Of a stretch of 64,000 bases of DNA, positions 18,750-45,379 are shown piece by piece. The DNA is from Anthoceros angustus (lineage: Eukaryota; Plantae; Anthocerotophyta). The stretch spans positions 248,001 through 312,000 of the forward strand of contig VJWM01000193.1 in NCBI GenBank assembly GCA_010909165.1. Reading direction: 5' to 3'. Both the position numbers and the translations under genes were made by a program. The notes under the pieces are model-generated. The model was not told the DNA's origin, did not search any database, and worked only from the letters and a program-made list of their open reading frames with translations. Each line of letters begins with the position of its first letter. Position 1 is the first letter of the stretch.

Positions 18750-20940
18750 ATGGGGAGGGTGAAATCGCGTTGTGGGCGGCCGGAATTGGGAGGAGAGTGG
18801 GAGGAAAGGAAGCGGAGGGGGAGCTTCTGCTCCAGGACGCTGCCGCTGCTTTTGATTTTGGCGTGCGGGGTGGGAGCAATTTGTGGGTTCTGCGGGGTGG
18901 AGACCTGGCGGACGGGGTGGACCGCGTTTGCTGCGGGGGTGGTGATGGTGGCGTTGCTGCGGAGGGGGTCCAGGCGAGAGCTGCGGCGGGTGGAAGAGAA
19001 GGCGAGGCTGTTGGAGGCGGAGGTTCGGGAGGAGACCAAGGCGGAGTTTCAGTCCTTCCTGCACCCTGACTTCGACAAGGATTTTCTGCAGCTGCTTGGT
19101 ACTCTGGACGAGGTGAGGGAACGTGTTGTGTGTCTTGGGCGTTAGATGATGCAGTGGTGGTGGTGGTGGTGGTGGTACTTACGAGTGCGTGTGTGTGTGT
19201 GGTGTGGTGTGTGTGTTCCAGTCGTCCTTGTGGAGGTCCCTTGAAGCAAGGACTGGATGGTAAGCAGCCACCAGATTGTTTTCTCTTGTTCGCTGGAGTG
19301 TGAGAAAGATGGGTGACGAGGTTTGATGTTGGGTGAGGAGGGTTTTTTGGCTGACCGATGTGGGTGTCTGGGTGATTTGTTTCGTCGGGGGGTGCAGGAA
19401 GACCGGAGGTCATGACTATGCGACCAAGCTGGAGAACGTTGCAGCTGAGGCACGAGCTGTTGCTGCCAGGTTGAATGCTGCTGCTAGCCAAGCTCATGCG
19501 TTTGCAGAAAAGTTAGCCTTGCCAGGTTTTGGTCAAGATGAGGATGAGCTGAGTCTGAGGACTGTTGCCACAGGCGTTTCTGCCTTAGGGACAGATGGGA
19601 TGAGTACCAGAAGCAATGTGCTCTACGAAGATCCTGAGTGTAAATCTGAAGATGAGCTGAGCTCTGAGAGTGGTTTGACCGTAGAGACCTCGTTGCCGAA
19701 ACCGGAGGACTGTTTGCTCACCATCAGCTGCAGAGTTGAAGGCGTGGCTCCAGCAAGACCAGATGAGGTTGCTTCTCAGACTAGTTTTGGGGCAGGTGAT
19801 CGAGTGTCGGACGGAGATACGACCACGGTTACAGTTGGTGAAGATTTCGTATACCGACGAACTGGTTCGATGACTGTGTTTGTGGATATTGTGGGGCCTG
19901 AAGATGATCCAGTGCCCAGCAACGAGTCTGCTCATGACATGCAACCAGTCATGCAGCAGCAGCAGGACTTGACAGAACTTGTTGGGGATGTGATTCGGAT
20001 TGCCGAACCTGAAGAGGAAGCAGCTGAGGAGCTGGTAGATGGCCCAGACTCATGCCTTGAGACTGAAGACATTGGTCCAGAAAGTGAAGATGGATGGCAT
20101 GGAGGGAGTGTGGTGACCGCTGATCTCTTTGAGGATATTGCCTCGGAGGAAGCTACTCTCAATACTCGCATCATGGGTTCTGAAACACAAGATAGTGTGT
20201 CTGTTATGGCCAGTCCCGTCGAATCTGCGGCATCGAAACAATGCTCAGATAGGGACTTCGATGCTATGGCGGCGGGGCTGCCAGGTGCTGCTGGCACCGT
20301 GAGTACTTCGAGCTACAGAACCACCTGGACAGATACATCCTTCGGCCAAACTGAAGAGGGCGCCTGTTCACAAGCCAGCCCTGACGAACGTTTTCCGTCT
20401 AGGACATTGAGCTTTAGGGAGGCGGGTACAGGTCACAGTCATCTTACGACCCAATCGGTGACGTCCAGGCATCGGGTCTCGAAAAGTGACGGGGAGTTTC
20501 TGTTCCGGGATTCCTTGGAAGGCAGTGCATCTGAAAGGGAAAACGTCTCGAGCGTGACAAGTAGTCCCATGGGGTATGGCTCATCTCTAAAACCCATGGG
20601 TACCACGAGCATCAGCAGCAGGTTGCCGGAGGATGCTTCTCCCACCCACGTTACAAGGACGAGCAACAAGCCTCAGGGCATTGCGTCGAGGCTACGAGGT
20701 GTCCTGAGATCAAACAGGTTCGCTAGCAGTAAAGTTGTCCCGAGACGAGATGACATACCAAGGCAAGGTTCCAGCTCCAAGAAGGAAGATGCGTCCAAAG
20801 CCAATGTTGCTCCGAAGCGGGAAGACGTGCTGAAAGCCAATAGAATACCATCTGCAGAAGCTGCTCCAAAGGTGGGTACTAGCGCAAAGGCGCTGCAAAA
20901 CGCGAAAGCCATTTCTGTAAGAAGAAGTTTGGTTTCCTAG
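18750..20940 (+). CDS. Hypothetical protein: two hydrophobic segments, a coiled coil, then a long acidic/Ser-rich disordered tail
   Basis: Exon 1 is 18750 to ~19112 (GAG|gtgagg). The intron carries (GGT)n/(GT)n. Exon 2 is an uninterrupted ORF of >500 codons to TAG 20940. A possible 41-nt intron (20917-20957, gtaag...ttgcag) would extend the CDS to 21140. Confidence 0.65.
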
Positions 20941-22250: not shown

Positions 22251-23029
22251 GTCAGGACTTTCCAGAAGTGGTTGAGAGGAACATACTCATGTAGAAGACT
22301 GTTGTGGTGACACCTTCTACCCAGGGATAGACTACGTATTGACGTCTACCTCGAGCAACTACGACCACAAAGACTTGGAAAAGCTCAGGTCATAAAAACA
22401 TGCCACCACTAAGTCTAAGAAAAGACAAGTCAATGATACAAGCAGATTGTATTAGGTGCCCCAACCCTAATCCAAAGCTTAGTGTCACCATCTACACCTC
22501 CACGATCATACATGTCATAGTTTTCAGTAGTCCATAAACATAAGCAAAGAATAACAAACAATCATAGACAAGTGGAATTGCACACAACAACACATTAGTT
22601 TAATTACTAGCAAGAACCACATGATCCTCATGAATAAATAAGACACCTTAATACATAAAACCACAATAATAAAAGAGACTAAGCGATTGAAGCAACAAGA
22701 GAAGAGACAGCTTAATAAAATCAAACTAATATTATAATAAAATGTAAGAAATATCTTACAAAAGCCTTACTAATATCCACTACAGGTTGATATAGTACAA
22801 GATTTGAGTTGGTGCAACTCAAGCCAGAAACATACCACCAAGAGAGCTCACAAGCATAAATATAAGCAAAGGATAACACACAAAAGAATTGGACACAATA
22901 ATGCACAATTTGAGATATGCGCAAGAATCATAGAGTCCTCCTCAATAAAATATCTTTGGGGGAAACTGCGATGATGATGGAAATAGACCAAGCGAGAAGA
23001 GCAACAGGAGAAGAGACACCTTAATGAAA

Positions 23030-23300
23030 TTTAAAATTGGTCCCCGCGCCTTGCACAAGTTCTCGACACGTCTATAAATTTATAAACCTCCTCTAGCTTC
23101 TGCTAAATCTATAAACCTACTCTACATCTTGCTAAATAAGCATTACATGCTGCCATAATTTTGGTCCCCACTTTCTTGAACTGCTCATTCACTAGTTGCT
23201 CAAAATGCAAGGGTGGATTTCGCATCAAATTAATACAACCTGGACTTGCAGCACATAAGAAAATAATTTTTTTGTATGCTTGAGAATTCGTTTCTCCTTT
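23030..23300 (-). pseudogene. Diverged C-terminal UBC23/24 fragment, repeated at ~24230-24490 and ~25670-25930
   Basis: The minus strand reads LMRNPPLHFEQLVNEQFKKVGTKIMAACNAY, matching the C-terminus of the full copies. Confidence 0.7.
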
Positions 23301-26300
23301 CTTTGTCTTTTGTTAAAGGGTAATGGGTAGTAAGATTTTATGAAGTACTCTTACGAGCTCATGGTTTGCGATCTAGTTAGCGCATTTTAGTCATCAATTT
23401 CAAAAAACTCACCAAGATTGAACCTTTGTTAATGAGGAAATTTAGTGACATGGGCCTGACATGGCGTTGAGGTAGAAATGAGGAGGCAGTTAAGAACCAA
23501 ACTCTTGGACAAACTAGCTAAGAACTAAACTCTTGAAAAAATTAGATTGAGCATCTTCATTTGATCCACATCCATCACATTGCGTGAGACCAACCGTAAG
23601 GACTTTGCCCCATACGTAATGTTGAACAAACGTTCGCACTTGCCTATCAGTGCCACGATTCTTTCAAAAATAGGCACTAAAATGCCTTCCCAATTTGGGA
23701 GATATGGTTCTCCTATCCCTACAACACAAAGAATTTAACGAATATAGGTACTACTTTTCTTTCTAGCTATTTCACCTAGAAAGGCTATTCAAAGGAAAAT
23801 CTCAATACAATTTCAAATATTGGTCCAATGATACATATATAGACCAAATTCTATATATTTCTCGATAAAGAGAAAAGCAAACTAGGGTTGAGAGGAGAAC
23901 CAAACACGAAATCTCAAGATAATTTTGAGATATATGGCCCAATGACACATATATATAGACTAAACTAGATATATTTCTCGATAAACGAAAAGCAAACTAG
24001 GGTCCACTATTATTTTTCTTCCTCTACCAAATAAAGGAAATGATTTTGAGTATTGGAAAACACCAAAGGAGAACAAAAGAATTGGACACAATAATGCACA
24101 ATTTGAGATATGCGCAAGAATCATAGAGTCCTCCTCAATAAAATATCTTTGGGGAAGCTGCGATGATGATGGAAATAGACCAAGCGAGAAGAGCAACAGG
24201 AGAAGAGACACCTTAATGAAATTTAAAATTGGTCCCCCGCGCCTTGCACAAGTTCTCGACACGCCTATAAATTTATAAACCTCCTCTAGCTTCCGCTAAA
24301 TCTATAAACCTACTCTACATCTTGCTAAATAAGCATTACATGCTGCCATAATTTTAGTCCCCACTTTCTTGAACTGCTCATTCACTAGTTGCTCAAAATG
24401 CAAGGGTGGATTTCGCATCAAATTAATACAACTGGACTTGCACATAAGAAAATAATTTTTGTATGCTTGAGAATTTCTCCTTTCTTTGTCTTTTGTTAAA
24501 GGGTAATGGGTAGTAAGATTTTATGAAGTACTCTTACGAGCTCATGGTTTTGCGATCTAGTTAGCGCATTTTAGTCATCAATTTCAAAAACTCACCAAGA
24601 TTGAACCTTTGTTAATGAGGAAATTTAGTGACATGGGCCTGACATGGCGTTGAGGTAGAAATGAGGAGGCAGTTAAGAACCAAACTCTTGGACAAACTAG
24701 CTAAGAACTAAACTCTTGAAAAAAAATTAGATTGAGCATCTTCATTTGATCCACATCCATCACATTGCGCGTGAGACCAACCAGAAGGACTTTGCCCCAT
24801 ACGTAATGTTGAACAAACGTACCCGCACTTGCCTATCAGGTGCCACGATTCTTTCAAAAAAATAGGCACTAAATGCCTTCCCAATTTGGGAGATATGGTT
24901 CTCCTATCCCTACAACACAAAGAATTTAACGAATATAGGTACTACTTTTCTTTCTAGCTATTTCACCTAGAAAGGCTATTCAAAGGAAAATCTCAATACA
25001 ATTTCAAATATTGGTCCAATGATACATATATAGACCAAATTCTATATATTTCTCGATAAAGAGAAAAGCAAACTAGGGTTGAGAGGAGAACCAAACACGA
25101 AATCTCAAGATAATTTTGAGATATATGGCCCAATGACACATATATATAGACTAAACTAGATATATTTCTCGATAAACGAAAAGCAAACTAGGGTCCACTA
25201 TTATTTTTCTTCCTCTACCAAATAAAGGAAATGATTTTGAGTATTGGAAAACACCAAAGGAGAACAAAAAGAAGTTTCAGATAATTTTAAATATATGACC
25301 CAATGACACATATATAGACTAAAATGGATATACTTCTCCATAAATAGAAAAGCAAACCAGGTTCAAAGGGGAACGAAAAGTCCATGTAGATGATAATGTT
25401 AAGGAAATTAAGGAAAACACACGAGGCTTGGGAGTGAGAGGAGAATTTTGGTTTGTGTTGAAAAACTATTTTTAATTATTATGCTTGAATCAAAGCTAAA
25501 TAAATATAGATTAAAAGAATTGGACACAATAATGCACAATTTGAGATATGCGCAAGAATCATAGAGTCCTCCTCAATAAAATATCTTTGGGGAAGCTGCG
25601 ATGATGATGGAAATAGACCAAGCGAGAAGAGCAACAGGAGAAGAGACACCTTAATGAAATTTAAAATTGGTCCCCGCGCCTTGCACAAGTTCTCGACACG
25701 TCTATAAATTTATAAACCTCCTCTAGCTTCGCTAAATCTATAAACCTACTCTACATCTTGCTAAATAAGCATTACATGCTGCCATAATTTTGGTCCCCAC
25801 TTTCTTGCTCATTCACTAGTTGCTCAAAATGCAAGGTGGATTTCGTGCATCAAATTAATACAACTTTGGACTTGCATAAGAAAATAATTTTTTTGTATGC
25901 TTGAGAATTCGTTTCTCCTTTCTTTGTCTTTTGTTAAAGGGTAATGGGTAGTAAGATTTTATGAAGTACTCTTACGAGCTCATGGTTTGCGATCTAGTTA
26001 GCGCATTTTAGTCATCAATTTCAAAAAACTCACCAAGATTGAACCTTTGTTAATGAGGAAATTTAGTGACATGGGCCTGACATGGCGTTGAGGTAGAAAT
26101 GAGGAGGCGGTTAAGAACCAAACTCTTGGACAAACTAGCTAAGAACTAAACTCTTGAAAAAATTAGATTGAGCATCTTCATTTGATCCACATCCATCACA
26201 TTGCGTGAGACCAACCGTAAGGACTTTGCCCCATACGTAATGTTGAACAAACGTAGCACTTGCCTATCAGGTGCCACGATTCTTTCAAAAATAGGCACTA

Positions 26301-27994
26301 AAATGCCTTCCCAATTTGGGAGATATGGTTCTCCTATCCCTACAACACAAAGAATTTAACGAATATAGGTACTACTTTTCTTTCTAGCTATTTCACCTAG
26401 AAAGGCTATTCAAAGGAAAATCTCAATACAATTTCAAATATTGGTCCAATGATACATATATAGACCAAATTTATATATTTCTCGATAAAGAGAAAAGCAA
26501 ACTAGGGTTGAGAGGAGAACCAAACAAATCTCAAGATAATTTTGAGATATATGGCCCAATGACACATATATAGACTAAACTAGATATATTTCTCGATAAC
26601 GAAAAGCAAACTAGGGTCCACTATTATTTTTCTTCCTCTACCAAATAAAGGAAATGATTTTGAGTATTGGAAAACACCAAAGGAGAACAAAAAGAAGTTT
26701 CAGATAATTTTAAATATGACCCAATGACACATATATAGACTAAAATGGATATACTTCTCCATAAATAGAAAAGCAAACCAGTTCAAAGGGGAACGAAAAG
26801 TCCATGTAGATGATAATGTTAAGGAAATTAAGGAAAACACACGAGGCTTGGGAGTGAGAGGAGAATTTTGGTTTGTGTTGAAAAACTATTTTTAATTATT
26901 ATGCTTGAATCAAAGCTAAATAAATATAGATTAAAAGAGTCTATGGAGAAATATGGAAAATTTTACACTCACTAAAATGGAAGAAGAACTTGTTGAATCC
27001 TCATACATTGTAGAAAATGAGCAGCTAACAACTTCTTCTTTGAATGTCACGCCCATGTAGAGAAGTTTCCAACCACCTTACAGATGCTCTCTGGACACGT
27101 CAACGTGAATAGGTTGGGAGGAGTTCATATTCTTGCTTATTGTTCCGTCCTACCAAAGCACATCAAACGTGCGGTGGGTAGTGGTAACAAAGATCCTCCT
27201 GAGGTTCCCAGTTGGGCAACACCAAGGATGACGAGATAGTCGTTGGGATGCCTCCCGATTTAGAAGTGCCGTGAGCATAATAGGCAAAGTCACGCGTTTC
27301 ATCGCTGCTAACGCCATCATCGACATTTGATGTGTTTCAGGGGCACGATTCTTTCAAAAAAATAGGCACTAAAATGCCTTCCCAATTTTGGGAGATATGG
27401 TTCTCCTATCCCTACAACACAAAGAATTTAACGAATATAGGTACTACTTTTCTTTCTAGCTATTTCACCTAGAAAGGCTATTCAAAGGAAAATCTCAATA
27501 CAATTTCAAATATTGGTCCAATGATACATATATAGACCAAATTCTATATATTTCGATAAAGAGAAAAGCAAACTAGGGTTGAGAGGAGAACCAAACACGA
27601 AATCTCAAGATAATTTTGAGATATATGGCCCAATGACACATATATAGACTAAACTAGATATATTTCGATAAACGAAAAGCAAACTAGGGTCCACTATTAT
27701 TTTTCTTCCTCTACCAAATAAAATGATTTTGAGTATTGGAAAACACCAAAGGAGAACAAAAAGAAGTTTCATAATTTTAAATATATGACCCAATGACACA
27801 TATATAGACTAAAATGGATATACTTCTCCATAAATAGAAAAGCAAACCAGTTCAAAGGGGGCGAAAAGTCCATGTAGATGATAATGTTAAGGAAATTAAG
27901 GAAAACACACGAGGCTTGGGAGTGAGAGGAGAATTTTGGTTTGTGTTGAAAAACTATTTTTAATTATTATGCTTGAATCAAAGCTAAATAAATA

Positions 27995-28530
27995 TAGATT
28001 AAAAGAGTCTATGGAGAAATATGGAAAATTTTACACTCACTAAAATGGAAGAAGAACTTGTTGAATCCTCATACATTGTAGAAAATGAGCAGCTAACAAC
28101 TTCTTCTTTGAATGTCACGCCCATGTAGAGAAGTTTCCAACCACCTTACAGATGTGCTCTCCGGACACGCCAACGTGAATAGGTTGGGAGGAGTTCATAT
28201 TCTTGCTTATTGTTCCGTCCTACCAAAGCACATCAAACGTGCGGTGGGTAGTGGTAACAAAGATCCTCCACCGTTCCCTGCAGCAACACCAAGGATGACG
28301 AGATAGTCGCTGGGATGCCTCCCACGATTTAGAAGTGCCGTGAGCATAATAGGCAAAGTCACGCAGTTGGGCGTTTCATCGCTGCTAACGCCATCATCGA
28401 CATTTGATGTGTTTCGTGGCCCGATTCTAATTTTGACGGCTGCTGGGACATGGTCCATGCCGACCTGAATCCCATTAAGCTTCTTATAATAAGCGACTTG
28501 GCAATCATGAGATGATGGTCTCCTATCACC
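27995..28530 (-). pseudogene. Internally deleted sister fragment of the UBC gene, present in every large unit (also ~31890-32410, 35800-36340, 39680-40220, 43560-44106; partial at ~26935-27340)
   Basis: TISKNMNSSQPIHVDVSREHICKVVGNFSTW..TFKEEVVS matches TISKDMDSCQLIHVDVSGEH...KVVGNFFTRDVTFKEEVVS of the full gene, with the intervening segment missing. Confidence 0.7.
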
Positions 28531-28637
28531 CTCGCAAATAATTTGGCGAATATAGGTAGGTACTACTATTCTTTGAAAGTCTTAAAATTTTTGAAGAAAA
28601 TTTGATGGTTATTATAAATTCATTACAAATGATTACT

Positions 28638-31274
28638 TCAAGGAAGTTTCTCAAAAGTCGCTTTCAACTTCGCCACAAGTTTTGCTAACGATAACTTGAA
28701 GCCGAGGACCTACATGTGTCTCCTCTAGTGCATCACTATGGGAATGTGATAAAGTGTCGATGCAAAACCTACTCTAGCTCCTTGAATAAGCATTACATGC
28801 CGCCACAATTTTGGTCCCCACTTTCTTGAAGTGCTCATTAACTAGTTGTTCAAAATGCAAGGAGGATTTCATCAAATACAACATGGACTTAGAGCACAAG
28901 AGAAAACAATTTTCGTGATACTTGAGAATTCTTTCTCCTTCCTCCGTATTTTGTTGATGATCAAAGTCCGTTCGTTGTAGAAAGGCTTCTCGGTGAGCAC
29001 AAGACTTTGGATTGAAAGGAGCACTTGCATGATGTTAGAAGCCTTTGGATTCCAAGCCTCGATGTCTTCCCATGCCATGTGTTTAGCAAGTCGAGACATA
29101 CTTCACCGCTTTCATAAAGATTGGGATTAATCCGCAAACCTTTAGAGTAATAATGTGCTTGGTGGAACATCGGATACCGCGAGAGATATATATCAAAAAT
29201 ATATAGTCCATCATGATATGGGGTGCCATCGCCCTGCTGATTACCGCCAAAAGATCCATCCGTTCTTCATATACCCGCACGTAAATTGTGTCCGGAAGAT
29301 TTTTACTAGGAGGTCCCACTCATGTTGAACTCGCTCATCCATTTCCTCCGAATGCCCACATTATTAATGTTTGAGAAAAAGTGGTGGTTGCTTGCATCTT
29401 TGACTATATCAAAATGCTTAAAGGGCTCTCCCTCCGCTCTCCTCGATCCTTGTGGCTTCGGTTTGACACTTGATGCATATTTTGTCATTTCAAGAGACAT
29501 ATCTCGAATCCATTCTCATGATGGCGCTCGCCCACATCTTCACCCACATCCATATTCGCACTTTACATCCAGATAGGCCCATCCTTGCAAGGGACCTTGA
29601 AATGGCCAACTTGCTTTGTTTTTCCCTTATAGGTAGGTGCACCGCTGCTAGGTTGACTAGAAGCATCTTCACCATCGCTTGCCGCCACTACAAGCCTCCT
29701 CCTCATCATGACTTGGATCACTCGGATCATGAGCGCTCTCAAGAGTCCGAGTCACTTTCGATGAGGATTCGCCATCGTATTTAATGACTACATGTACATC
29801 ATTCAACCCCACTTGTGACGTGGAACCATCCATCCATGCAACTTCAACATCCCCATTATCCGACAGCCAGTCTGATGATACACCCAAACCATGCATATGG
29901 ATTCGACTTTGGAATATTATGGTCCTTTGGGAGTCGAACGACAACATCTTTGATATTGTAATCATATTGAGCATGCTCGCAAAGCTCAAACACACTAACA
30001 ACTTCTTCTTTGAATGTCACGCCCCTTGTAAAGAAGTTCCCAACCACCTGGTAAAGGCGCTGTTTGAAATCTCCAGATAACGCCAAGGCCATGTTCGATA
30101 ATGTTTGAATTGTTTTCGTCATCAACATCTTTACACACATTGCCTTGGCCAAAAGTTGTGCTCTCCGGACACGTCAACGTGAATAAGTTGGCAAGAGTCC
30201 ATATCCTTGCTTATTGTTCCGCCCCGCCAAAGCACATCAATCGTGGTTTTGATGCCTACCACTTGATGCCTCGAGTAACACCTTCCTCCTCCTCGCTTTT
30301 GGCGTTTTGGTTGAGATTCTAAACTTGGGCGCCGCCCTTTCGATCCTTGCTTCTTGGTTTCACATATGACATTGGCGTCCTCAAAGCTAGAGCCCACAAC
30401 AATCGCTTCATTGTGTTTGAGAGGTTTCATGTGCTCATGCAAAAGGCATCGGCCACCTAGCCAATCTGTGAGAAAACTGGTTCATGATACCAAATCTTTT
30501 GGCTTCGCTATGCATTTCTAGGCTTCCTCGATCCTGTACATTGCCATAAGTAGCACACCATTCAACGACAACCATGTTAATATCAATTTGTGAAATTGTC
30601 CCACATAATTTCCTCCTTCGCTTGTTGTAGTTCCCAACCAACCATGTCGCTTTTGTAGAGTTTTTGATGACTTGCTACAACTCTCGACCAATAAATAATG
30701 GCATATCCTCCTCCGCTATGTTGTGACATTTTAGATGGTCGGGTTTGTAAGCTTTAGTTGGCATTGGTTCCATCGTTAAACACCAATGTCACAAGCTCAA
30801 TCACCGTGTCTACTTTTCCCACCCATCCAAAGACCGATGACAAAGTCCCCACTTGAAATGAGCTTATTCTTCTTAAGCTTTTACTATCCATATCCTTTAG
30901 GAGCATACCATTTGCAAGTTCCAAGTCCATCAGAATCATAACATTTGTCACGATCCCCATTTGCCCTAATGGGTCTTGTGTAAGTGCCGCATCGTTATGC
31001 CTCAAAGTCCTATCCACAATATGGAGATGGTGTGGATTCACTATGGTCTTGTTCAAGTCCATCCACAACACTCTTGTTTGCCTACCGCTTCTTCTTCCTC
31101 CTCCGTATCGCTATTATATTCCGAGTCCGAACTGGATCTCCAAAGGTCCGCTGTACAATTCCTAAAAGAGAAGGATTAGATTTCATAGAAACCACATCTT
31201 CGCTAAACACTGATGTGTTTCGCCATTTCGGCTTTTTCTTTCCTTCAACCTTCTCCTTCCATTTTGATCGGCAT
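28638..31274 (-). CDS. UBC23/UBC24(PHO2)/UBE2O-type large ubiquitin-conjugating E2, copy 1 (intronless, frameshifted in this assembly)
   Basis: Start MPIKMEGE. N-terminal motifs LGIVQRTFGD, RVLWMD, DPLGQMGIV..V..TVDLE, WVGKVD.V..VTLVFNDG and VAWMDGSTSQV. UBC core LPDTIYVRVYEERMDLL, NPNLYESGEVCLDLLNTW (catalytic Cys), QVLLSIQSLVL.EKPFYNE. Ends GFKLSLAKLVAKLKATFEKLP*. About 880 codons. Confidence 0.85.
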
Positions 31275-31339
31275 TGTAATGCTCGCCTTGAAAGGTGTAG
31301 AAAGTAACAAGAGGGACAAAATTTCCAAACTAATGCTTT

Positions 31340-31760
31340 CACCTAGAAAGGCTATTCAAAGGAAAATCTCAATACAATTTCAAATATTGGTCCAATGATA
31401 CATATATAGACCAAATTCTATATATTTCTCGATAAAGAGAAAAGCAAACTAGGGTTGAGAGGAGAACCAAACACGAAATCTCAAGATACAATTTTGAGAT
31501 ATATGGCCCAATGACACATATATAGACTAAACTAGATATATTTCTCGATAAACGAAAAGCAAACTAGGGTCCACTATTATTTTTCTTCCTCTACCAAATA
31601 AAGGAAATGATTTTGAGTATTGGAAAACACCAAAGGAGAACAAAAGAAGTTTCAGTATAATTTTAAATATATGACCCAATGACACATATATAGACTAAAA
31701 TGGATATACTTCTCCATAAATAGAAAAGCAAACCAGGTTCAAAGGGGAACGAAAAGTCCA
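31340..31760 (-). promoter_or_regulatory. Putative UBC upstream region made of three sub-repeats (present in every unit)
   Basis: (g/c)ccaatga(t/c)acatatatagac...aaaagcaaac(t/c)agg occurs three times. Contains site-II-like GGCCCA, telo-box-like TAGGGTT and P1BS-consensus GGATATAC (31702-31709). Motif function is unproven. Confidence 0.4.
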
Positions 31761-32521
31761 TGTAGATGATAATGTTAAGGAAATTAAGGAAAACACACGA
31801 GGCTTGGGAGTGAGAGGAGAATTTTGGTTTGTGTTGAAAAACTATTTTTAATTATTATGCTTGAATCAAAGCTAAATAAATATAGATTAAAAGAGTCTAT
31901 GGAGAAATATGGAAAATTTTACACTCACTAAAATGGAAGAAGAACTTGTTGAATCCTCATACATTGTAGAAAATGAGCAGCTAACAACTTCTTTGAATGT
32001 CACGCTCCATGTAGAGAAGTTTCAACCACCTTACGGATGTGCTCTGGACACGTCAACGTGAATAGGTTGGGAGGAGTTCATATTCTTGCTTATTGTTCCG
32101 TCCTACCAAAGCACATCAAACGTGTGTGGGTAGTGGTAACAAAGATCCTCCACAACAGTTCCCGCCAGCAACACCAAGGATGACGAGATAGTCGTTGGGA
32201 TGCCTCCCACGATTTAGAAGTGCGTGTGAGCATAATAGGCAAAAGTCACGCGGCGTTTCATCGCTGCTAACGCCATCATCGACATTTGATGTGTTTCAGG
32301 CTCGATTCTAATTTGACTACTTGCTTTGACATGGTCCATGCCTAATTTTAATCCCATTAAGCTTCTTATAATAAGCGACTTGGCAATCTGCGGATGATGG
32401 TCTCCTATCACCTCTGCACAAATAATTTGGCGAATATAGGTAGGTACTACTATTCTTTGAAAGTCTTAAAATTTTTGAAGAAAATTTGATGGTTATTATA
32501 AATTCATTACAAATGATTACT

Positions 32522-35185
32522 TCAAGGAAGTTTCTCAAAAGTCGCTTTCAACTTCGCCACAAGTTTTGCTAACGATAACTTGAAGCCCAAGGACCTACAT
32601 GTGTCTCCCTCTAGTGCATCACTATGGGAACGTGATAAAGTGTCGATGCAAAACCTACTCTAGCTCCTGCTTGAATAAGCATTACATGCCACAATTTTGG
32701 TCCCCACTTTCTTGAAGTGCTCATTAACTAGTTGTTCAAAATGCAAGGAGGATTTCGCATCAAATACAACATGGACTTAGCACAAGAGAAAACAATTTCA
32801 CGATACTTGAGAATTCTTTTCTCCTTCCTCCAGATTTTGTTGATGATCAAAGTCCGTTCGTTGTAGAAAGGCTTCTCGGTGAGCACAAGACTTTGGATTG
32901 AAAGGAGCACTTGCATGATGTTAGAAGCCTTTGGATTCCAAGCCTCGATGTCTTCCCATGCCATGTGTTTAGCAAGTCGAGACATACTTCACCGCTTTTC
33001 ATAAAGATTGGGATTAATCCAAAACCTTTAGAGTAATAATGTGCTTGTGGAACATCTGGATACTCGCGAGAGATATATATCAAAAATATATAGTCCATCA
33101 TGATATGGGGTGCCATCCGCCCCGTGATTACATCAAAAGATCCATCCGCTCTTCATATACCCGCACGTAAATTGTGTCTGGAAGATTTTTACTAGGAGGT
33201 CCCCACTCATGTTGAACTCGCTTCATCCATTTCCTCCGAATGCCCACATTATTAGTGTTTGAGAAAAGTGGTGGTTGCTTGCATCTTTGACTATATCAAA
33301 ATGCTTAAAGGGCTCTCCTCCGCTCTCTCCTCGATCCTTGTGGCTTCCGGTTTGACACTTGATGCATATTTTGTCATTTCAAGAGACATATCTGAATCCA
33401 TTCTCATGATGGCGTGCTCGTCCACATCTTCACCCACATCCATATTCGCACTTTGCTACATCCGTATAGGCCCATCCTTGCAAGGGACCTTGAAATGGCC
33501 AACTTGCTTTGTTTTTCCCTTATAGGTAGGTGCACCGCTAGGTTGACTAGAAGCATCTTCACCATCGCTTGCATGTCACTACAAGCCTCCTCCTCATCAT
33601 GACTTGGATCACTCGGATCATGACCGTCTCAAGAGTCTCGAGTCACTTCGATGAGGATTCGCCATCGTATTTAATGACTACATGTACATCATTCAACCCC
33701 ACTTGTGACGTGGAACCATCCATCCATGCAACTTCAACATCCCCATTGCTCGTGATTTGCGATGATACACCCAAACCATGCGATTGGATTCGACTTTGGA
33801 ATATTATGGTCCTTTGGGAGTCGAACGACAACATCTTTGATATTGTAATCATATTGAGCATGCTCGCAAAGCTCAAACACACTAACAACTTCTTCTTTGA
33901 ATGTCACGTCCCTTGTAAAGAAGTTCCCAACCACCACCACATTGCGGTCGTTGCTTGAAATCCACCAGTATAACGCCAAGGCCATGTTCGACAATGTTTG
34001 AATTGTTTTCGTCATCAACATCTTTAACGGTCACATTGCCTTGGCCAAAAGTTGTGCTCTCCGGACACGTCAACGTGAATAAGTTGGCAAGAGTCCATAT
34101 CCTTGCTTATTGTTCCGTCTACCAAAGCACATCAAGCTGTGGTTTTGATGCCTACCACTTTGTGACTCGAGTAACACCTTCCTCCTCCTCGCTTTTGGCG
34201 TTTGGTTGAGATTCTAAACTTGGGCGCCTCTTTCGATCCTTGCTTCTTGGTTTCACATATGACATTGGCGTCCTCAAAGCTAGAGCCCACAACAATCGCT
34301 TCATTGTGTTTGAGAGGTTTCATGTGCTCATGCAAAAGGCATCGGCCACCTAGGCGCCAACTGTGAGAAAACGGTTCATGATGATCAAATCTTTTGCTTG
34401 CTATGCGTCTAGGCTTCCTCCGATCCTGTGTACATTGCCATAAGTAGCACACCATTCAACGACAACCATGTTAATATCAATTTGTGAAATTGTTCCACAT
34501 AATTTCCTCCTTCGCTTGTTGTAGTTCCCAACTAACCATGTCGCCTTTTGTAGAGTTTTTTGATGACTTGCTACAACTCTCTGACCAATAAATAATGGCA
34601 TATCCTCCTCTGCTATGTTGTGACATTTTAGATGGTCAGGGTTTGTAAGCTTTAGTTGGCACTGTGCTCCATCGTTAAACACCAATGTCACAAGCTCAAT
34701 CACTCTGTCTACTTTTCCCACCCATCCAAAGACCACAGACAAAGTCCCCACTTGAAATGAGCTTATTCTTCTTAAGCTTTTACTATCCATATCCTTTAGG
34801 AGCATACCATTTGCAAGTTCCAAGTCCACCGTAATCATAACATTTGTCACGATCCCCATTTGCCCTAATGGGTCTTGTGTAAGTGCCCTGCATCGTTATG
34901 CCTCAAAGTCCTATCCACAATATGGAGATGGTGTGGATTCACTATGGTCTTGTTCAAGTCCATCCACAACACTCTTGTTTGCCTACCAGTTTCTTCTTCC
35001 TCCTCTGTATCACTATTATATTCCGAGTCTGAATCTGGATCTCCAAAGGTCCGTTGTACAATTCCTAAAAGAGAAGGATTAGATTTCATAGAAACCACAT
35101 CTTCGCGAAACACTCGATGTGTTTCGCCGCCCATTTCGGCTTTTTCTTTCCCTTTGAACCCTTCTCCTTCCATTTTGATCGGCAT
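32522..35185 (-). CDS. UBC23/UBC24-type E2, copy 2 (intronless, frameshifted in this assembly)
   Basis: Same motifs as copy 1; ORFs 34865-35254 and 34401-34859 give the N-terminal domains and SGEVCLDLLNTW the catalytic region. Confidence 0.85.
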
Positions 35186-36447
35186 TGTAATGCTCTGCCT
35201 TGAAAGGTGTAGAAAGTAACAAGAGGGACAAAATTTCCAAACTAGCTGTTTCACCTAGAAAGGCTATTCAAAGGAAAATCTCAATACAATTTCAAATATT
35301 GGTCCCATGATACATATATAGACCAAATTCTATATATTTCTCGATAAAGAGAAAAGCAAACTAGGGTTGAGAGGAGAACCAAACACGAAATCTCAAGATA
35401 CAATTTTGAGATATATGGCCCAATGACACATATATAGACTAAACTAGATATATTTCTCGATAAACGAAAAGCAAACTAGGGTCCACTATTATTTTTCTTC
35501 CTCTACCAAATAAAGGAAATGATTTTGAGTATTGGAAAAACACCAAAGGAGAACAAAAAGAAGTTTCAGTATAATTTTAAATATATGACCCAATGACACA
35601 TATATAGACTAAAATGGATATACTTCTCCATAAATAGAAAAGCAAACCAGGTTCAAAGGGGAAACGAAAAGTCCATGTAGATGATAATGTTAAGGAAATT
35701 AAGGAAAACACACGAGGCTTGGGAGTGAGAGGAGAATTTTGGTTTGTGTTGAAAAACTATTTTTAATTATTATGCTTGAATCAAAGCTAAATAAATATAG
35801 ATTAAAAGAGTCTATGGAGAAATATGGAAAATTTTACACTCACTAAAATGGAAGAAGAACTTGTTGAATCCTCATACATTGTAGAAAATGAGCAGCTAAC
35901 AACTTCTTCTTTGAATGTCACGCTCCATGTAGAGAAGTTTCCAACCACCTTACAGATGTGCTCTCGGACACGCCAACGTGAATAGGTTGGGAGGAGTTCA
36001 TATTCTTGCTTATTGTTCCGTCCTACCAAAGCACATCAAACGTGCGGTGGGTAGTGGTAACAAAGATCCTCCACCAGTTCCGCTAAGCAGCAACACCAAG
36101 GATGACGAGATAGTCGTTGGGATGCCTCCCCGATTTAGAAGTGCTGTGAGCATAATAGGCAAAGTCACGCAGCGCTTCATCGCTGCTGCTAACGCCATCA
36201 TCGACATTTGATGTGTTTCCAGGGCCTGATTCTAATTTGACGGCCCTTTGCGGACATGGTCCATCTTGACCACGAATCCCATTAAGCTTCTTATAATAAG
36301 CGACTTGGCAATCTGCGAGATGATGGTCTCCTATCACCATCGCACAAATAATTTGGCGAATATAGGTAGGTACTACTATTCTTTGAAAGTCTTAAAATTT
36401 TTGAAGAAAATTTGATGGTTATTATAAATTCATTACAAATGATTACT

Positions 36448-39067
36448 TCAAGGAAGTTTCTCAAAAGTCGCTTTCAACTTCGCCACAAGTTTTGCTAACG
36501 ATAACTTGAAGCCCAAGGACCTACATGTGTCTCCCTCTAGTGCATCACTATGGGGCGTGATAAAGTGTCGATGCAAAACCTCTAGCTCTGCTGAATAAGC
36601 ATTACATGCGCCACAATTTTGGTCCCCACTTTCTTGAAGTGCTCATTAACTAGTTGTTCAAAATGCAAGGAGGATTTCGCATCAAATACAACATGGACTT
36701 GCACAAGAGAAAACAATTTTAAATACTTGAGAATTCTTTTCTCCTTCCTCCAGATTTTGTTGATGATCAAAGTCGGTTCGTTGTAGAAAGGCTTCTCAAG
36801 TGAGCACAAGACTTTGGATTGAAAGGAGCACTTGCATGATGTTAGAAGCCTTTGATTCCAAGCCTCCGATGTCTTCCCATGCCATGTGTTTAGCAAGTCA
36901 GACATACTTCACCGCTTCATAAAGATTGGGATTAATCCGCAAACCTTTAGAGTAATAATGTGCTTGGTGGAACATCGGATACTCACAGAGATATATATCA
37001 AAATATATAGTCCATCATGATATGCCATCTCCTTTGATTACATTACCAAAGATCCATCCGTTCTTCATATACCCGCACGTAAATTGTGTCTGGAAGATTT
37101 TTTACTAGGAGGTCCCCACTCATGTTGAACTCGCTTCATCCATTTCCTCCAATGCCCACATTATTAGTGTTTGAGAAAAGTGGTGGTTGCTTGCATCTTT
37201 GACTATATCAAAATGCTTAAAGGGCTCTCCCTCTGCTCTCTCCTCGATCCTTGTGGCTTCCGGTTTGACACTTGATGCATATTTTGTCATTTCAAGAGAC
37301 ATATCGAATCCATTCTCATGATGATGGCTCGTCACATCTTCACCCACATCCATATTCGCATCAGCAACTACATCCGTATAGGCCCATCCTTGCAAGGGAC
37401 CTTGGAAATGGCCAACTTGCTTTGTTTTTCCCTTATAGGTAGGTGCACCGCTAGGTTGACTAGAAGCATCTTCACCATCGTTGCCGCTGTCTCTACAAGC
37501 CTCCTCCTCATCATGACTTGGATCACTTCATGACTCTCCTCAAGAGTCCGAGTCACTTTCGATGAGGATTCGTCATCGTATTTAATGACTACATGTACAT
37601 CATTCAACCCCACTTGTGACGTGGAACCATCCATCCATGCAACTTCAACATCCCCATTATCCTATTGATGATACACCCAAACCATGCGATTCGGATTCGA
37701 CTTTGGAATATTATGGTCCTTTGGGAGTCGAACGACAACATCTTTGATATTGTAATCATATTGAGCATGCTCGCAAAGCTCAAACACACTAACAACTTCT
37801 TCTTTGAATGTCACGCCCCTTGTAAAGAAGTTCCCAACCACCTTACAGCTTGCAAAGGCGTTGCTTGAAATCCAATTACGTGTTAACGCCAAGGCCATGT
37901 TCGACAATGTTTGAATTGTTTTCGTCATCAACATCTTTAATACACATTGCCTTGGCCAAAAGTTGTGCTCTCCTGGACACGTCAACGTGAATAAGTTGGC
38001 AAGAGTCCATATCCTTGCTTATTGTTCACGCCAAAGCACATCAACGTGGTTTTGATGCCTACCACTTTGTGACAGCCTCGAGTAACACCTTCCTCCTCCT
38101 CGCTTTTGTTTTGGTTGAGATTCTAAACTTGGGCCGCCTTCGATCCTTGCTTCTTGGTTTCACATATGACATTGGCGTCCTCAAAGCTAGAGCCCACAAC
38201 AATCGCTTCATTGTGTTTGAGAGGTTTCATGTGCTCATGCAAAGGCGCCACCTAGTCGCCTAATGTGAGAAAACCTGTTCATGACTACCAAATCTTTTGG
38301 CTTCATTGCATTAGGCTTCCTCCTCGATCCTGTGTACATTGCCATAAGTAGCACACCATTCAACGACAACCATGTTAATATCAATTTGTGAAATTGTCCC
38401 ATAATTTCCTCCTTCGCTTGTTGTAGTTCCCAACTAACCATGTCGCTTTTGTAGAGTTTTTGATGACTTGCTACAACTCTCTCCAATAAATAATGGCATA
38501 TCCTCCTCGCTATGTTGTGACATTTTAGATGGTCGTGGTTTGTAAGCTTTAGTTGGCACTGCTCCATCGTTAAACACCAATGTCACAAGCTCAATCACTG
38601 TGTCTACTTTTCCCACCCATCCAAAGACCGATGACAAAGTCCCCCACTTGAAATGAGCTTATTCTTCTTAAGCTTTTACTATCCATATCCTTTAGGAGCA
38701 TACCATTTGCAAGTTCCAAGTCCACCTGTAATCATAACATTTGTCACGATCCCCATTTGCCCTAATGGGTCTTGTGTAAGTGCCAGCATCGTTATGCCTC
38801 AAAGTCCTATCCACAATATGGAGATGGTGTGGATTCACTATGGTCTTGTTCAAGTCCATCCACAACACTCTTGTTTGCCTACCGGTTCTTCTTCCTCCTC
38901 CGTATCGCTATTATATTCGAGTCCTAACTGGATCTCCAAAGGTCCGGTACAATTCCTAAAAGAGAAGGATTAGATTTCATAGAAACCACATCTTGAAACA
39001 CTGATGTGTTTCGCCCATTTCGGCTTTTTCTTTCCCTTCAACCTTCTCCTTCCATTTTGATCGGCAT
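36448..39067 (-). CDS. UBC23/UBC24-type E2, copy 3 (intronless, frameshifted in this assembly)
   Basis: Same motifs, e.g. DLLNTWHGKTSEAWN, EKPFYNEP, PFKHFDIVKDASNHHF. Confidence 0.85.
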
Positions 39068-40324
39068 TGTAATGCTCGCCTTGAAAGGTGTAGAAAGTAA
39101 CAAGAGGGACAAAATTTCCAAACTAGTCGTTTCACCTAGAAAGGCTATTCAAGGAAAATCTCAATACAATTTCAAATATTGGTCCAATGATACATATATA
39201 GACCAAATTCTATATTTCTCGATAAAGAGAAAAGCAAACTAGGGTTGAGAGGAGAACCAAACGAAATCTCAATACAATTTTGAGATATATGGCCCAATGA
39301 CACATATATAGACTAAACTAGATATATTTCTCGATAAAGAGAAAAGCAAACTAGGGTCCACTATTATTTTTCTTCCTCTACCAAATAAAGGAAATGATTT
39401 TGAGTATTGGAAAAACACCAAAGGAGAACAAAAGAAGTTTCAAGATAATTTTAAATATATGACCCAATGACACATATATAGACTAAAATGGATATACTTC
39501 TCCATAAATAGAAAAGCAAACCAGGTTCAAAGGGAAACGAAAAGTCCATGTAGATGATAATGTTAAGGAAATTAAGGAAAACACACGAGGCTTGGGAGTG
39601 AGAGGAGAATTTTGGTTTGTGTTGAAAAACTATTTTTAATTATTATGCTTGAATCAAAGCTAAATAAATATAGATTAAAAGAGTCTATGGAGAAATATGG
39701 AAAATTTTACACTACTAAAATGGAAGAAGAACTTGTTGAATCCTCATACATTGTAGAAAATGAGCAAGCAACAACTTCTTCTTTGAATGTCACGCTCCAT
39801 GTAGAGAAGTTTCCAACCACCTTACGGATGTGCTCTGGACACGTCAACGTGAATAGGTTGGGAGGAGTTCATATTCTTGCTTATTGTTCCGTCCTACCAA
39901 AGCACATCAAACGCGGTGTGGGTAGTGGTAACAAAGATCCTCCACAACAAAGTTCCTGTTCCAGCAACACCAAGGATGACGAGATAGTCGTTGGGATGCC
40001 TCCTGGCGATTTAGAAGTCAGTGAGCATAATAGGCAAAGTCACGCAGTTGGGCGTTTCATCGTCGATTCTAACGCCATCATCGACATTTGATGTGTTTCC
40101 GGCCTGATTCTAATTTGACTGACCCTTTATGACATGGTCCATGCCGAATCCATCCCCATTAAGCTTCTTATAATAAGCGACTTGGCAATCATGCGAGATG
40201 ATGGTCTCCTATCACCCTCGCACAAATAATTTGGCGAATATAGGTAGGTACTACTATTCTTTGAAAGTCTTAAAATTTTGAAGAAAATTTGATGGTTATT
40301 ATAAATTCATTACAAATGATTACT

Positions 40325-42939
40325 TCAAGGAAGTTTCTCAAAAGTCGCTTTCAACTTCGCCACAAGTTTTGCTAACGATAACTTGAAGCCCAAGGACCTA
40401 CATGTGTCTCCTCTAGTGCATCACTATGGGAACGTGATAAAGTGTCGATGCAAAACCTACTCTAGCTCCTCAATAAGCATTACATACGCCACAATTTTGG
40501 TCCCCACTTTCTTGAAGTGCTCATTAACTAGTTGTTCAAAATGCAAGGGAGGATTTCGCATCAAATACAACATGGACTTGCAGCACAAGAGAAAACAATT
40601 TTCTCGATACTTGAGAATTCTTTTCTCCTTCCTCATTTTGTTGATGATCAAAAGTCCGGTTCAGAAAGGCTTCTCGAGTGAGCACAAGACTTTGGATTGA
40701 AAGGAGCACTTGCATGATGTTAGAAGCCTTTGATTCCAAGCCTCCGATGTCTTCCCATGCCATGTGTTTAGTGAGACATACTTCACCGCTTTTCATGATT
40801 GGGATTAATCCAAAAACCTTTAGAGTAATAATGTGCTTGGTGGAACATCGGGATACTCGCGAGATATATATCAAAAATATATAGTCCATCATGATATGGG
40901 GCCATCCGCCCTGATGATTACCCCGTCAAAAGATCCATCCGCTCTTCATATACCCGCACGTAAATTGTGTCCGGAAGATTTTTTACTAGGAGGTCCCACT
41001 CATGTTGAACTCGCTTCATCCATTTCCTCCAATGCCCACATTATTAGTGTTTGAGAAAAGTGGTGGTTGCTTGCATCTTTGACTATATCAAAATGCTTAA
41101 AGGGCTCTCCCTCCTCCTCCTCGATCCTTGTGGCTTCCGGCTCGACACTTGATGCATATTTTGTCATTTCAAGAGACATATCAATCCATTCTCATGATGG
41201 CGTGCTCGTCACATCTTCACCCACATCCATATTCGCACCAGCCTACATCCGTGATAGGCTCATCCTTGCAAGGGACCTTGAAATGGCCAACTTGCTTTGT
41301 TTTTCCCTTATAGGTAGGTGCACCGCTAGGTTGACTAGAAGCATCTTCACCATCGTTGCCGCCACTACAAGCCTCCTCCTCATCATGACTTGGATCACTC
41401 GGATCATGACCGCTCTCAAGAGTCTCGAGTCACTTTATGAGGATTCGCCATCGTATTTAATGACTACATGTACATCATTCAACCCCACTCTTGACGTGGA
41501 ACCATCCATCCATGCAACTTCAACATCCCCATTATCCGACAGCTGTTGGATGATACACCCAAACCATGCAGTGGATTCGACTTTGGAATATTATGGTCCT
41601 TTGGGAGTCGAACGACAACATCTTTGATATTGTAATCATATTGAGCATGCTGTCAAAGCTCAAACACACTAACAACTTCTTCTTTGAATGTCACGTCCCT
41701 TGTAAAGAAGTTCCCAACCACCTTACAGTTATGCGTTGCTTGAAATCCACCCACACATATAACGCCAAGGCCATGTTCGACAATGTTTGAATTGTTTTCG
41801 TCATCAACATCTTTAATACACATTGCCTTGGCCAAAAGTTGTGCTCTCCGGACACGCCAACGTGAATAAGTTGGCAAGAGTCCATATCCTTGCTTATTGT
41901 TCCGTCTCGCCAAAGCACATCAATCGTGGTTTTGATGCCTACCACTTTGTGATGACCTCGAGTAACACCTTCCTCCTCCTCGCGTTTTGGCGCTTTGGTT
42001 GAGATTCTAAACTTGGGCGCCGCCTTCGATCCTTGCTTCTTGGTTTCACATATGACATTGGCGTCCTCAAAGCTAGAGCCCACAACAATCGCTTCATTGT
42101 GTTTGAGAGGTTTCATGTGCTCATGCAAAAGGCATCGGCCACCTAGGCTGTAATCAGAAAAGCGGTTCATGATAACAAATTTGCTACTAGGCTTCCTCCG
42201 ATCCGTACATTGCCATAAGTAGCACACCATTCAACGACAACCATGTTAATATCAATTTGTGAAATTGTCCCACATAATTTCCTCCTTCGCTTGTAGTTCC
42301 CAACTAACCATGTCGCTTTTGTAGAGTTTTTGATGACTTGCTACAACTCTCGACCAATAAATAATGGCATATCCTCCTCCTCGCTATGTTGTGACATTTT
42401 AGATGGTCGTGGTTTGTAAGCTTTAGTTGGCACTGCTCCATCGTTAAACACCAATGTCACAAGCTCAATCACCGTGTCTACTTTTCCCACCCATCCAAGA
42501 TGACAAAGTCCCACTTGAAATGAGCTTATTCTTCTTAAGCTTTTACTATCCATATCCTTTAGGAGCATACCATTTGCAAGTTCCAAGTCCACCGTAATCA
42601 TGACATTTGTCACGATCCCCATTTGCCCTAATGGGTCTTGTGTAAGTGCTAACGCATCGTTATGCCTCAAAGTCCTATCCACAATATGGAGATGGTGTGG
42701 ATTCACTATGGTCTTGTTCAAGTCCATCCACAACACTCTTGTTTGCCTACCGGTTTCTTCTTCCTCCTCCGTATCGCTATTATATTCCGAGTCAACTGGA
42801 TCTCCAAAGGTCCGTCAGACAATTCCTAAAAGAGAAGGATTAGATTTCATAGAAACCACATCTTCGCGAAACACTGATGTTTCACGCCATTTCGCTTTTT
42901 CTTTCCTTCGAACCCTTCTCCTTCCATTTTGATCGGCAT
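40325..42939 (-). CDS. UBC23/UBC24-type E2, copy 4 (intronless, frameshifted in this assembly)
   Basis: Same motifs, e.g. VVGIKTTIDVLWRDGT, HNFWPRQCV, YRENCFLLCCKSMLYLMRNPPLHFEQLV. Confidence 0.85.
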
Positions 42940-44429
42940 TGTAATGCTCGCCTTGAAAGGTGTAGAAAGTAACAAGAGGGACAAAATTTCCAAACTAGTC
43001 ATTTCACCTAGAAAGGCTATTCAAAGGAAAATCTCAATACAATTTCAAATATTGGTCCAATGATACATATATAGACCAAATTCTATATATTTCTCGATAA
43101 AGAGAAAAGCAAACTAGGGTTGAGAGGAGAACCAAACACGAAATCTCAAGATAATTTTGAGATATATGGCCCAATGACACATATATAGACTAAACTAGAT
43201 ATATTTCTCGATAAACGAAAAGCAAACTAGGGTCCACTATTATTTTTCTTCCTCTACCAAATAAAGGAAATGATTTTGAGTATTGGAAAACACCAAAGGA
43301 GAACAAAAAGAAGTTTCAAGATAATTTTAAATATATGACCCAATGACACATATATAGACTAAAATGGATATACTTCTCCATAAATAGAAAAGCAAACCAG
43401 GTTCAAAGGGGAAACCTAAAAAGTCCATGTAGATGATAATGTTAAGGAAATTAAGGAAAACACACGAGGCTTGGGAGTGAGAGGAGAATTTTGGTTTGTG
43501 TTGAAAAACTATTTTTAATTATTATGCTTGAATCAAAGCTAAATAAATATAGATTAAAAGAGTCTATGGAGAAATATGGAAAATTTTACACTCACTAAAA
43601 ATGGAAGAAGAACTTGTTGAATCCTCATACATTGAAGAAAATGAGCAGCTAACAACTTCTTCTTTGAATGTCACGTCTCCATGTAGAGAAGTTTCCAACC
43701 ACCTTACAGATGTGCTCTCTGGACACGTCAACGTGAATAGGTTGGGAGGAGTTCATATTCTTGCTTATTGTTCCGTCTCTACCAAAGCACATCAAACGTG
43801 CAGGTGGGTAGTGGTAACAAAGATCCTCCACAGTCAGGTTCCCAGTTGGGCAGCAACACCAAGGATGACGAGATAGTCGTTGGGATGCCTACCACTGATT
43901 TAGAAGTGCTGTGTGAGCATAATAGGCAAAGTCACGCAGTGGGCGTTTCATCGTCAGTGCTAACGCCATCATCGACATTTGATGTGTTTCCATGGCCTGA
44001 TTCTAATTTGGACGGCCCTTGACATGGTCCATGCTGACCCTGAATCCCATTAAGCTTCTTATAATAAGCGACTTGGCAATCTACGAGATGATGGTCTCCT
44101 ATCACCTACTGGGTGTAAGCATGGTTTGGTGGTACACTTTTGTACCATATGGTTGTGGTACACTTGGTTACTTTTGAGAGATGAGAGAGAGATGTGAGAG
44201 AGTGATGTGAGATAGTCAAAGTTTCACTAAATTAATATTTTTTATTTTACTTATAGTTATAGTTTTATATTATTGTAGTTGATTATTTTATCTTACGTTT
44301 ACCTTGTCTATTTTTTACTTGTTTGAAGGTCAACGATCGCTTACCTTCGGCCGAAAGGCCTTCTGCTTCCTCCCGCCTCCACCTTCTTACATGTGCCTAC
44401 GCTTTGGCCGCGCCGGGTCTGCCTGTTGA

Positions 44430-45130
44430 TGCTCGAGGCCCTCTGCACGCCGAGGCCCTCTGCTGCTGGTCCTGCTCTCTGCTGATGCTCGAGGCCCTCT
44501 GCTGCTTCTTGAGGCCCTCTGCTGCTGCTCGAGGCCCTCTGCTGCTGCTGCTGGTCACGCCCTCTGCTGCTGCTGGTCACGCCCTCTGCTGCTGGTCCCG
44601 CCTAGGCCGGGTCCATCTGCTATCACAGGTGCTCCTATGTTTCTCCTACCAAAATTTATTCCCAGAAGGATGCTGCCTCAAGGCCGAGAGCGTGGGAAGC
44701 TTCAAGGGAGCTTGGGAGCTTAGGAGCCGAGAGCGTGGGAAGCTTGGGAGCCGAGAGCGTGGGAAGCTTGGGAGCCGAGGCGTGGGAAGCTTGGGAGTCG
44801 AGGCGTGGGAAGCTTGGGAGCTTGGGAGGAGTGTGGGAAGCTTGGGAGCTTGGGAGCTCAAGGCCGAGAGCGTGGGAAGCTTGGGAGCCGAGAGCGTGGG
44901 AAGCTTCAAGGAGCTTGGGAGCAAGGCCGAGAGCGTGGGAAGCTTCAAGGAGCTTGGGAGCCTGAAGGCCGAGAGCGTGGGAAGCTTGGGAGCTCAAGGC
45001 CGAGGCGTGGGAAGCTTGGGAGCTTGGGAGCCGAGGCGTGGGAGCTTGGGAGCTGAGGCCCTCTGCTGGTCACGCCCTCTGCTGCTGCTGCTGCTGCTGC
45101 TGGTCACGCCCTCTGCTGCTGGTCACGCCC

Positions 45131-45173
<43 letters not shown>

Positions 45174-45210
45174 ACGCCCTCTGCTGCTGCTGCTGCTGCT
45201 GGTCACGCCC

Positions 45211-45250
<40 letters not shown>

Positions 45251-45262
45251 ACGCCCTCTGGT
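44430..45262. repeat. Compound satellite: (CTG)n/gtcacgccct block, then (gggaagcttgggagccgagagcgt)n block, then (CTG)n block
   Basis: Directly visible. The central block (~44680-45055) is rich in AAGCTT. Confidence 0.9.
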
Positions 45263-45379
45263 CTTGCTCTTGCCCTCTGCGGTGTCTAAGAGTCAAGCAT
45301 GCTGGTTTTTCTTACTTTAGGGTGCATGCTGGTTTGTGCTTTTATTAACATGTTGCTAAAGCTTTTCGTTGTAGATGTT

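Follow-up and report, generated by a model that had tools for sequence, protein, structure and literature searches.

A tandem array of intronless giant-E2 units related to plant UBC23/UBC24 in the hornwort Anthoceros angustus, and CpG-centred differences among its assembled copies

The closest described systems for the locus reported here are the plant UBC23/UBC24 (PHO2) and animal UBE2O giant E2 (ubiquitin-conjugating) enzymes, those of the PHO2 family being usually low-copy. We analysed a 64,000-nucleotide stretch of Anthoceros angustus contig VJWM01000193.1 (assembly GCA_010909165.1, positions 248,001–312,000 of the forward strand; hereafter the window, numbered from its first letter), in which coding regions related to this family recur in tandem. 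The predicted array protein shares with UBC23/UBC24 and UBE2O the domain order, the NPN...C catalytic motif and a near-whole alignment to the family profile. It departs from the plant UBC23/UBC24 group in being shorter than most members (about 880 residues), in being only ~35% identical overall, and in being encoded by an intronless gene, multi-copy in tandem, that falls outside the seed-plant UBC23 and UBC24 clades. A second likeness is to ampliconic or tandemly duplicated gene clusters that arise by unequal crossing-over, in which units almost identical to one another are separated by repetitive spacers and flanked by incomplete ones, with the difference that neither dosage selection nor expression is in evidence here. 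The data described below make it probable, if well short of certain, that the locus is a real and recent array of at least four near-identical 3.9-kb giant-E2 units, whose frame breaks are mostly nanopore errors at methylated CpG.

Four head-to-tail units carrying giant-E2 coding regions

Self-comparison of the window resolved four complete units, arranged head to tail at 27855–43406 and measuring 3,887, 3,914, 3,874 and 3,877 nt. All four lie on the minus strand, and unit alignment and shared motifs place them at 27855–31741 (unit 1, coding region 28638–31274), 31742–35655 (unit 2, coding region 32522–35185), 35656–39529 (unit 3, coding region 36448–39067) and 39530–43406 (unit 4, coding region 40325–42939), with a read-contig joint as further evidence for unit 2. 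As assembled, units 1, 3 and 4 are 93.5–94.4% identical to unit 2, with 79–96 gap openings per 3.9 kb. The first-pass annotation had described four near-identical tandem units of ~3.9 kb and proposed that they were amplified recently; the unit lengths and a divergence of only 0.2–0.7% in clean columns (see the next section) bear out both points. It had set the limits of the array at 27464–44106, where the array is indeed found, but the repeat island is larger, extending over ~22.9–44.1 kb.

Two open pieces of the assembled sequence, both on the minus strand, score above the curated Pfam cut-offs and bear out the assignment to the giant-E2 family. The longest open piece of unit 2 (34401–34859) matches tSH3-B_UBE2O (PF23046) with 67 bits against a cut-off of 22.4 (E 1.7e-18), and an open stretch of unit 1 (28964–29266), which covers the UBC catalytic core including NPNLYESGEVCL, matches UQ_con (PF00179) with 33.1 bits against a cut-off of 27 (E 5e-08). 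SH3-A_UBE2O (17.2 bits, cut-off 24) and SH3-C_UBE2O (18.8 bits, cut-off 21) remain below threshold, in both cases on broken pieces. The predicted order of domains runs from SH3-A through tandem SH3-B and SH3-C to an acidic linker, followed by the UBC core that bears the catalytic Cys and by the C-terminal helix of the family. There is no space for introns in any unit, as had been noted from the sequence at the outset, since about 880 codons fit within 2,664 alignment columns and are collinear with family members. The predicted array gene is thus an intronless and divergent member of the plant UBC23/UBC24 (UBE2O-like) giant E2 family. If intact, the protein would act in the manner of UBE2O and PHO2, binding its substrate via the SH3-like domains and transferring ubiquitin from the catalytic Cys.

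None of the units can be read through as it stands. The first-pass annotation gave each a continuous coding span of ~2.64 kb, which is absent from all four: the longest open reading frame (ORF) within 26–46 kb is 186 residues, and the present assembly does not allow the copies to be read as intact genes of near identity. That span was in effect a mental consensus across copies. What all four copies do keep are the motifs MPIKMEGE, RVLWMD, KHFD, LLSIQ and GEVCL, and FEKLP followed by the stop. The catalytic motif NPNLYxSGEVCL, also said to be preserved, holds up in part, GEVCL being present in all four units while the whole motif (NPNLYESGEVCL) is contiguous in a single frame in unit 1 only (29093–29128); in units 2 and 3 the frame of NPNLY is not that of GEVCL, and unit 4 is without NPNLY. 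Translated searches (tblastn) with family members showed many frame switches in every unit, despite which each unit is collinear with residues 14–934 of P0003, the closest relative (see below).

CpG-centred differences and the underlying reading frame

The differences between units have an unusual distribution. Indels stand to substitutions at about 1:2, all unit pairs are about equally distant, and 98 of the 138 variable clusters are no more than 2 nt away from a CG (42.7±5.3 expected). The same holds for clusters containing an indel (80 of 112, with 36.3±4.9 expected). Seen from the other side, a variable column occurs at a distance of 2 nt or less from 71% of CG sites, compared with 17–46% for other dinucleotides. 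No enrichment of inter-unit differences was found at CHG sites, and homopolymers are mildly enriched among the differences that are not at CpG. Among the 1,988 columns that keep a distance of 6 nt or more from every CG and every gap, no more than 16 are variable, corresponding to 0.2–0.7% per pair, and these clean-column variants are nested, with units 1 and 2 forming one group and units 3 and 4 the other. The CpG pattern spans gene and spacer alike, which would imply methylation of the whole unit.

Methylation motifs are the leading source of nanopore consensus errors, followed by homopolymers (PMC6591954). We read the frame breaks as probable nanopore miscalls at methylated CpG because the indels are centred on CpG, the units are nearly identical in clean columns, independent read contigs disagree with the assembly, and the flanks are polished. 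The last point is illustrated by the neighbouring 837-residue ORF at 10757–13270 (+), an intact PLS-class pentatricopeptide repeat (PPR) gene with an E motif, whose uninterrupted frame is a sign of good polishing in the unique sequence of the window. Within the array, polishing with short reads would have left the errors in place, as no read can be assigned to one particular copy when the repeats are so nearly identical.

To read through the breaks, we built composites from variants observed in the four units and no others, the choice at each of 111 variable blocks being made by a dynamic programme. A stop-free path from ATG to TGA was obtained, of 2,643 nt with the dynamic programme, 2,634 nt when weighted by homology and 2,646 nt after hill-climbing. 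The hill-climbed composite scores 686 bits against a hidden Markov model (HMM) of 20 family members and covers nodes 5–990 of 1003 in order, its N-terminal UBE2O-type part aligning to nodes 5–576; the aligned residues are 19–457, 459–519 and 592–879, and the gap corresponds to the family's variable acidic linker. Measured against the stop-free composite, each unit carries 29–44 frame-changing differences, and no disabling change common to all four units could be demonstrated. We infer that the four copies descend from an ancestor whose reading frame was open and typical of the family.

The composite is an imperfect reconstruction. Both the homology-weighted and the hill-climbed versions still hold local off-frame bits, for example after GEVCL, and the latter retains two unit-2 bases that are missing from the reads and from the other three units. 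A null test with shifted starts was uninformative, as the shifted starts rejoined the true frame. Two simpler routes were rejected: a majority consensus of the four units kept many frame breaks owing to 96 tied columns, and a dynamic programme guided by stop-freeness alone strayed into open off-frames.

An independent view of the locus came from short reads of the same organism, a public DNA run and one RNA-like run, whose contigs we compared with unit 2. One read contig crosses the unit joint from 35656 to 31744, confirming the head-to-tail order, and the depth at this joint is about the same as that of the unit body. Only a 0.34 share of the 31-mers of unit 2 is present in the DNA run. The read contigs differ from unit 2 mostly by small indels (one contig of 307 nt shows 0 substitutions and 5 gap letters), and of the 12 indels listed, most agree with what other units show, seven of them with all three. 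Inside the ORF, unit 2 departs from the composite in blocks amounting to 17% of its length, and within these blocks fall four of the six listed indels and 21 of the 32 listed read substitutions. Two further read joints on unit 2 are absent from the window, one (depth 12.7, ~88% alike) that leads from 32582 to 34096 and leaves out 1,513 nt of the ORF, and one from 35267 to 35576 that skips 308 nt of sub-repeats. It is therefore probable that more partial or diverged copies lie elsewhere or that the assembly of the array is imperfect.

Family placement and surroundings of the array

An exhaustive HMMER search with the 152-residue piece of unit 2 that carries the tSH3-B_UBE2O domain returned 106 relatives, all at 41% identity or less, and those with names are plant UBC23/UBC24 proteins from Citrus, Cajanus, Cynara, Sphagnum, Diphasiastrum and Welwitschia. 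The best relative of the composite is P0003, with 35% identity over its full length (E 1.8e-151). Across the UBC domain, identity rises to 50–53% with the Diphasiastrum, Welwitschia and Sphagnum members; non-seed-plant members of the family are 48–54% identical among themselves overall. P0003 is itself a singleton that comes from a public run and is 43–46% identical to its own nearest kin, so the search led to no parent of the array gene.

In a FastTree phylogeny, the array protein sits on a long branch (1.65, compared with a median of 0.79, a length inflated by residual sequence errors) at the base of the land-plant clade with non-seed plants, next to Sphagnum, Diphasiastrum and P0003. It falls within neither the UBC24 clade, as PHO2 orthology would entail, nor the UBC23 clade. 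From this position outside both seed-plant clades, the array protein is neither closer to UBC23, as the first-pass annotation had supposed from its motifs, nor a PHO2 orthologue. A pattern scan for miR399-type target sites found none at up to 3 mismatches anywhere in the window, and Rfam and tRNA scans were blank.

The array is bordered on both sides by incomplete units. To its left, at 22900–27854, self-comparison found four shorter units of 1.07–1.43 kb (no strand assigned) that are built of array spacer segments and are without a gene body. Diverged C-terminal gene fragments occur in these short units at 23118–23302, 24311–24487 and 25747–25944 (minus strand), matching ORF nt 2326–2502 at 80–86% identity. 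To the right, a partial fifth unit (43407–44107, no strand assigned) holds 3′-flank segments only, matching unit-2 positions 11–672 at 92%, and forms the right end of the island without a gene. Older fragments of the E2 gene also persist in the 3′ spacer, at 31981–32124 (minus strand) in unit 2, where ORF nt 1223–1277 and 1026–1114 are represented at 85–93% identity; fragments of ORF nt 1026–1117 and 1223–1277 recur in every full unit. Duplication, deletion and decay have thus been at work here for longer, with a very recent four-fold amplification or homogenisation on top.

Upstream of the genes, a repeat scan of the spacer at 35276–35655 (no strand assigned) identified about three tandem sub-repeats of ~110 nt, each with the motif TATATATG. 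The sub-repeat found upstream of each gene also occurs at 26418–26617, 39156–39357 and 43029–43233, and every gene is preceded by a repeat of its own that carries TATA-like motifs. Read word depth reaches 2,526 at 35410–35540, within the sub-repeat, as against ~45 for the unit body, which makes the sub-repeat a member of a high-copy repeat family of the genome.

In base composition the island (35–43% G+C) lies below its flanks (45–60%). The earlier description of the array as far more AT-rich than neighbouring genes therefore stands for the island as a whole, but the contrast is modest for the ORF alone, at 43.7% against 50.4% in the neighbouring PPR gene. Other features of the window include tandem repeats at 1530–1959 (24-nt unit, 18.8 copies) and 586–1194 (134-nt unit, 4.5 copies), and a Ser/Glu-rich ORF of 535 residues without a Pfam match at 19333–20940 (+), just left of the island. 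Directly right of the array, at 44323–45348 (+), is a GC-rich, low-complexity region with 23–34-nt tandem repeats (44683–45235) and a repetitive ORF of 341 residues, with no assigned family. About 120 copies of the 7-nt repeat CAACCTA, strongly skewed in base composition, occupy 54474–55289. A copia-type gag ORF at 60423–61220 (+; Retrotran_gag_2, E 1.7e-30) marks a long terminal repeat (LTR) retrotransposon 16 kb right of the array.

Competing explanations and meaning of the array

Taken at face value, the assembly describes a genuine pseudogene array, in which each copy is a decaying relic with real, private frameshifts and stops. The short ORFs, the number of frame-changing differences in each copy and the lack of visible expression in the RNA-like run are all as such an array would have them, and the diverged older fragments in the spacer and short units (80–92% identity) demonstrate that decay has taken place at this locus. 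Natural CpG decay, however, produces transitions, not indels, and so would not have put indels at CpG. The low divergence away from CpG and gaps, the absence of unit 2's private indels from the read contigs and the lack of any demonstrable disabling change common to all units likewise speak against decay, and we consider this explanation distinctly unlikely. At the opposite pole, the first-pass annotation envisaged four intact and expressed genes, acting as a lineage-specific ubiquitin dosage system or spreading as a selfish amplicon under selection. Such a role would suit the open ancestral frame, the family motifs retained over the full length including the catalytic core, the near identity of the copies and the TATA-like motifs upstream of each. 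Yet the CpG-centred errors would imply methylation of gene and spacer together, which points more to repeat silencing, and the RNA-like run, from the same sample, contains no matching transcript. The long branch, though inflated by errors, also fits relaxed constraint. We therefore hold a dosage or selfish array to be unlikely, while taking it seriously.

Other explanations concern how the units came to be where they are. The true copy number may not be four, through over-expansion or collapse during assembly, in a region that is visibly error-ridden and for which the reads hold two skip joints foreign to the window. Against such an artefact, the tandem joint is found in independent contigs at roughly unit-body depth, and the nested clean-column variants are what distinct real copies would be expected to show; a wrong copy number thus seems rather improbable to us. 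The gene might also be a mobile cassette, retro-copied or captured by a transposon, as had been suggested, and inserted into a pre-existing 1.1-kb repeat, leaving filled and empty units side by side. This would account for the want of introns in a gene whose Sphagnum relative (P0034) has two, and for the short unit at 26786–27855, which lacks unit-2 positions 569–3500, that is, the gene with short flanks the size of untranslated regions (UTRs). This short unit is not a clean empty site, however, as ~115 nt of other sequence, part of it like a diverged gene start, replaces the gene, and the remaining short units keep the diverged C-terminal fragment and so look like deletion derivatives. No poly(A) tract follows the 3′ UTR, no target-site duplication emerged from the comparison of the unit lacking the gene with a full unit, and no transposon protein, transposase, LTR or terminal inverted repeat was found next to the array among repeats, ORFs and Pfam matches of the flanks. 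With only ~35% identity to its nearest known relative, neither was the gene copied recently from any known parent. The suggested capture is thus not borne out, and a mobile cassette is in our view very improbable.

Several observations also weigh against our preferred reading of a real, recent array broken mostly by nanopore errors. A choice point arises every ~24 nt, so that a stop-free composite is weak proof of intactness; one or two real frameshifts common to all copies could hide behind noisy neighbouring variants, and the linker (residues ~520–591) offers no homology for a frame check. Both the methylation of the array and the nanopore source of the errors are deduced from the sequence pattern. 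The mark of old methylation, CpG depletion, is not seen, the observed/expected ratio being 0.65–0.75 in the array, equal to the flanks, from which it follows that any methylation is not old. Among the listed read substitutions, 27 of 40 match none of the four units. The read contigs over the unit are short (170–470 nt) and of uneven depth (12–48), which means that the copies do differ in part, or that there are more of them elsewhere. Lastly, next to nothing of the unit is present in the RNA-like run, an observation that weighs little in either direction. One contig of this run, of 785 nt, shares 112 nt with unit 2 (34008–34119, with 2 other letters and 2 gaps) and then diverges; it may hint at a transcribed relative elsewhere, or at a transcript of a locus bearing a fragment of the gene.

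The best reading of the locus is nevertheless probably a young, methylated array that is likely to be silent and whose genes are intact or nearly so. We postulate that unequal crossing-over between the repetitive spacers, with their 110-nt sub-repeats and older gene fragments, was the likely route of amplification, and that the four copies were homogenised or amplified recently from an ancestor with an open frame. The CpGs of the array would be methylated, and the resulting nanopore miscalls, together with a few homopolymer errors, would have introduced most of the frameshifts and stops in each copy. The true copies are most likely intact or nearly so and would reside in silenced, methylated repeat chromatin, not in a dosage system.

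The main practical value of these observations is a caution about CpG-centred errors in repeats of this assembly. Because near-identical repeats keep such indel errors, readings of pseudogenes, of nonsynonymous to synonymous substitution ratios (dN/dS) and of divergence between copies are unsafe. Conversely, the error pattern is usable as an indirect map of CpG methylation. What is new for the family, which includes PHO2, is a lineage-specific, multi-copy and divergent giant-E2 member. If its genes are intact and expressed, the array would be an unusual amplification of E2 dosage in an early-diverging land plant, and would either have escaped part of its covering CpG methylation or be under the control of that methylation. 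The hornwort lineage would then possess an intronless, fast-evolving UBE2O-like E2/E3 hybrid, maintained as a dosage adaptation or as a selfish, conflict-driven amplicon.

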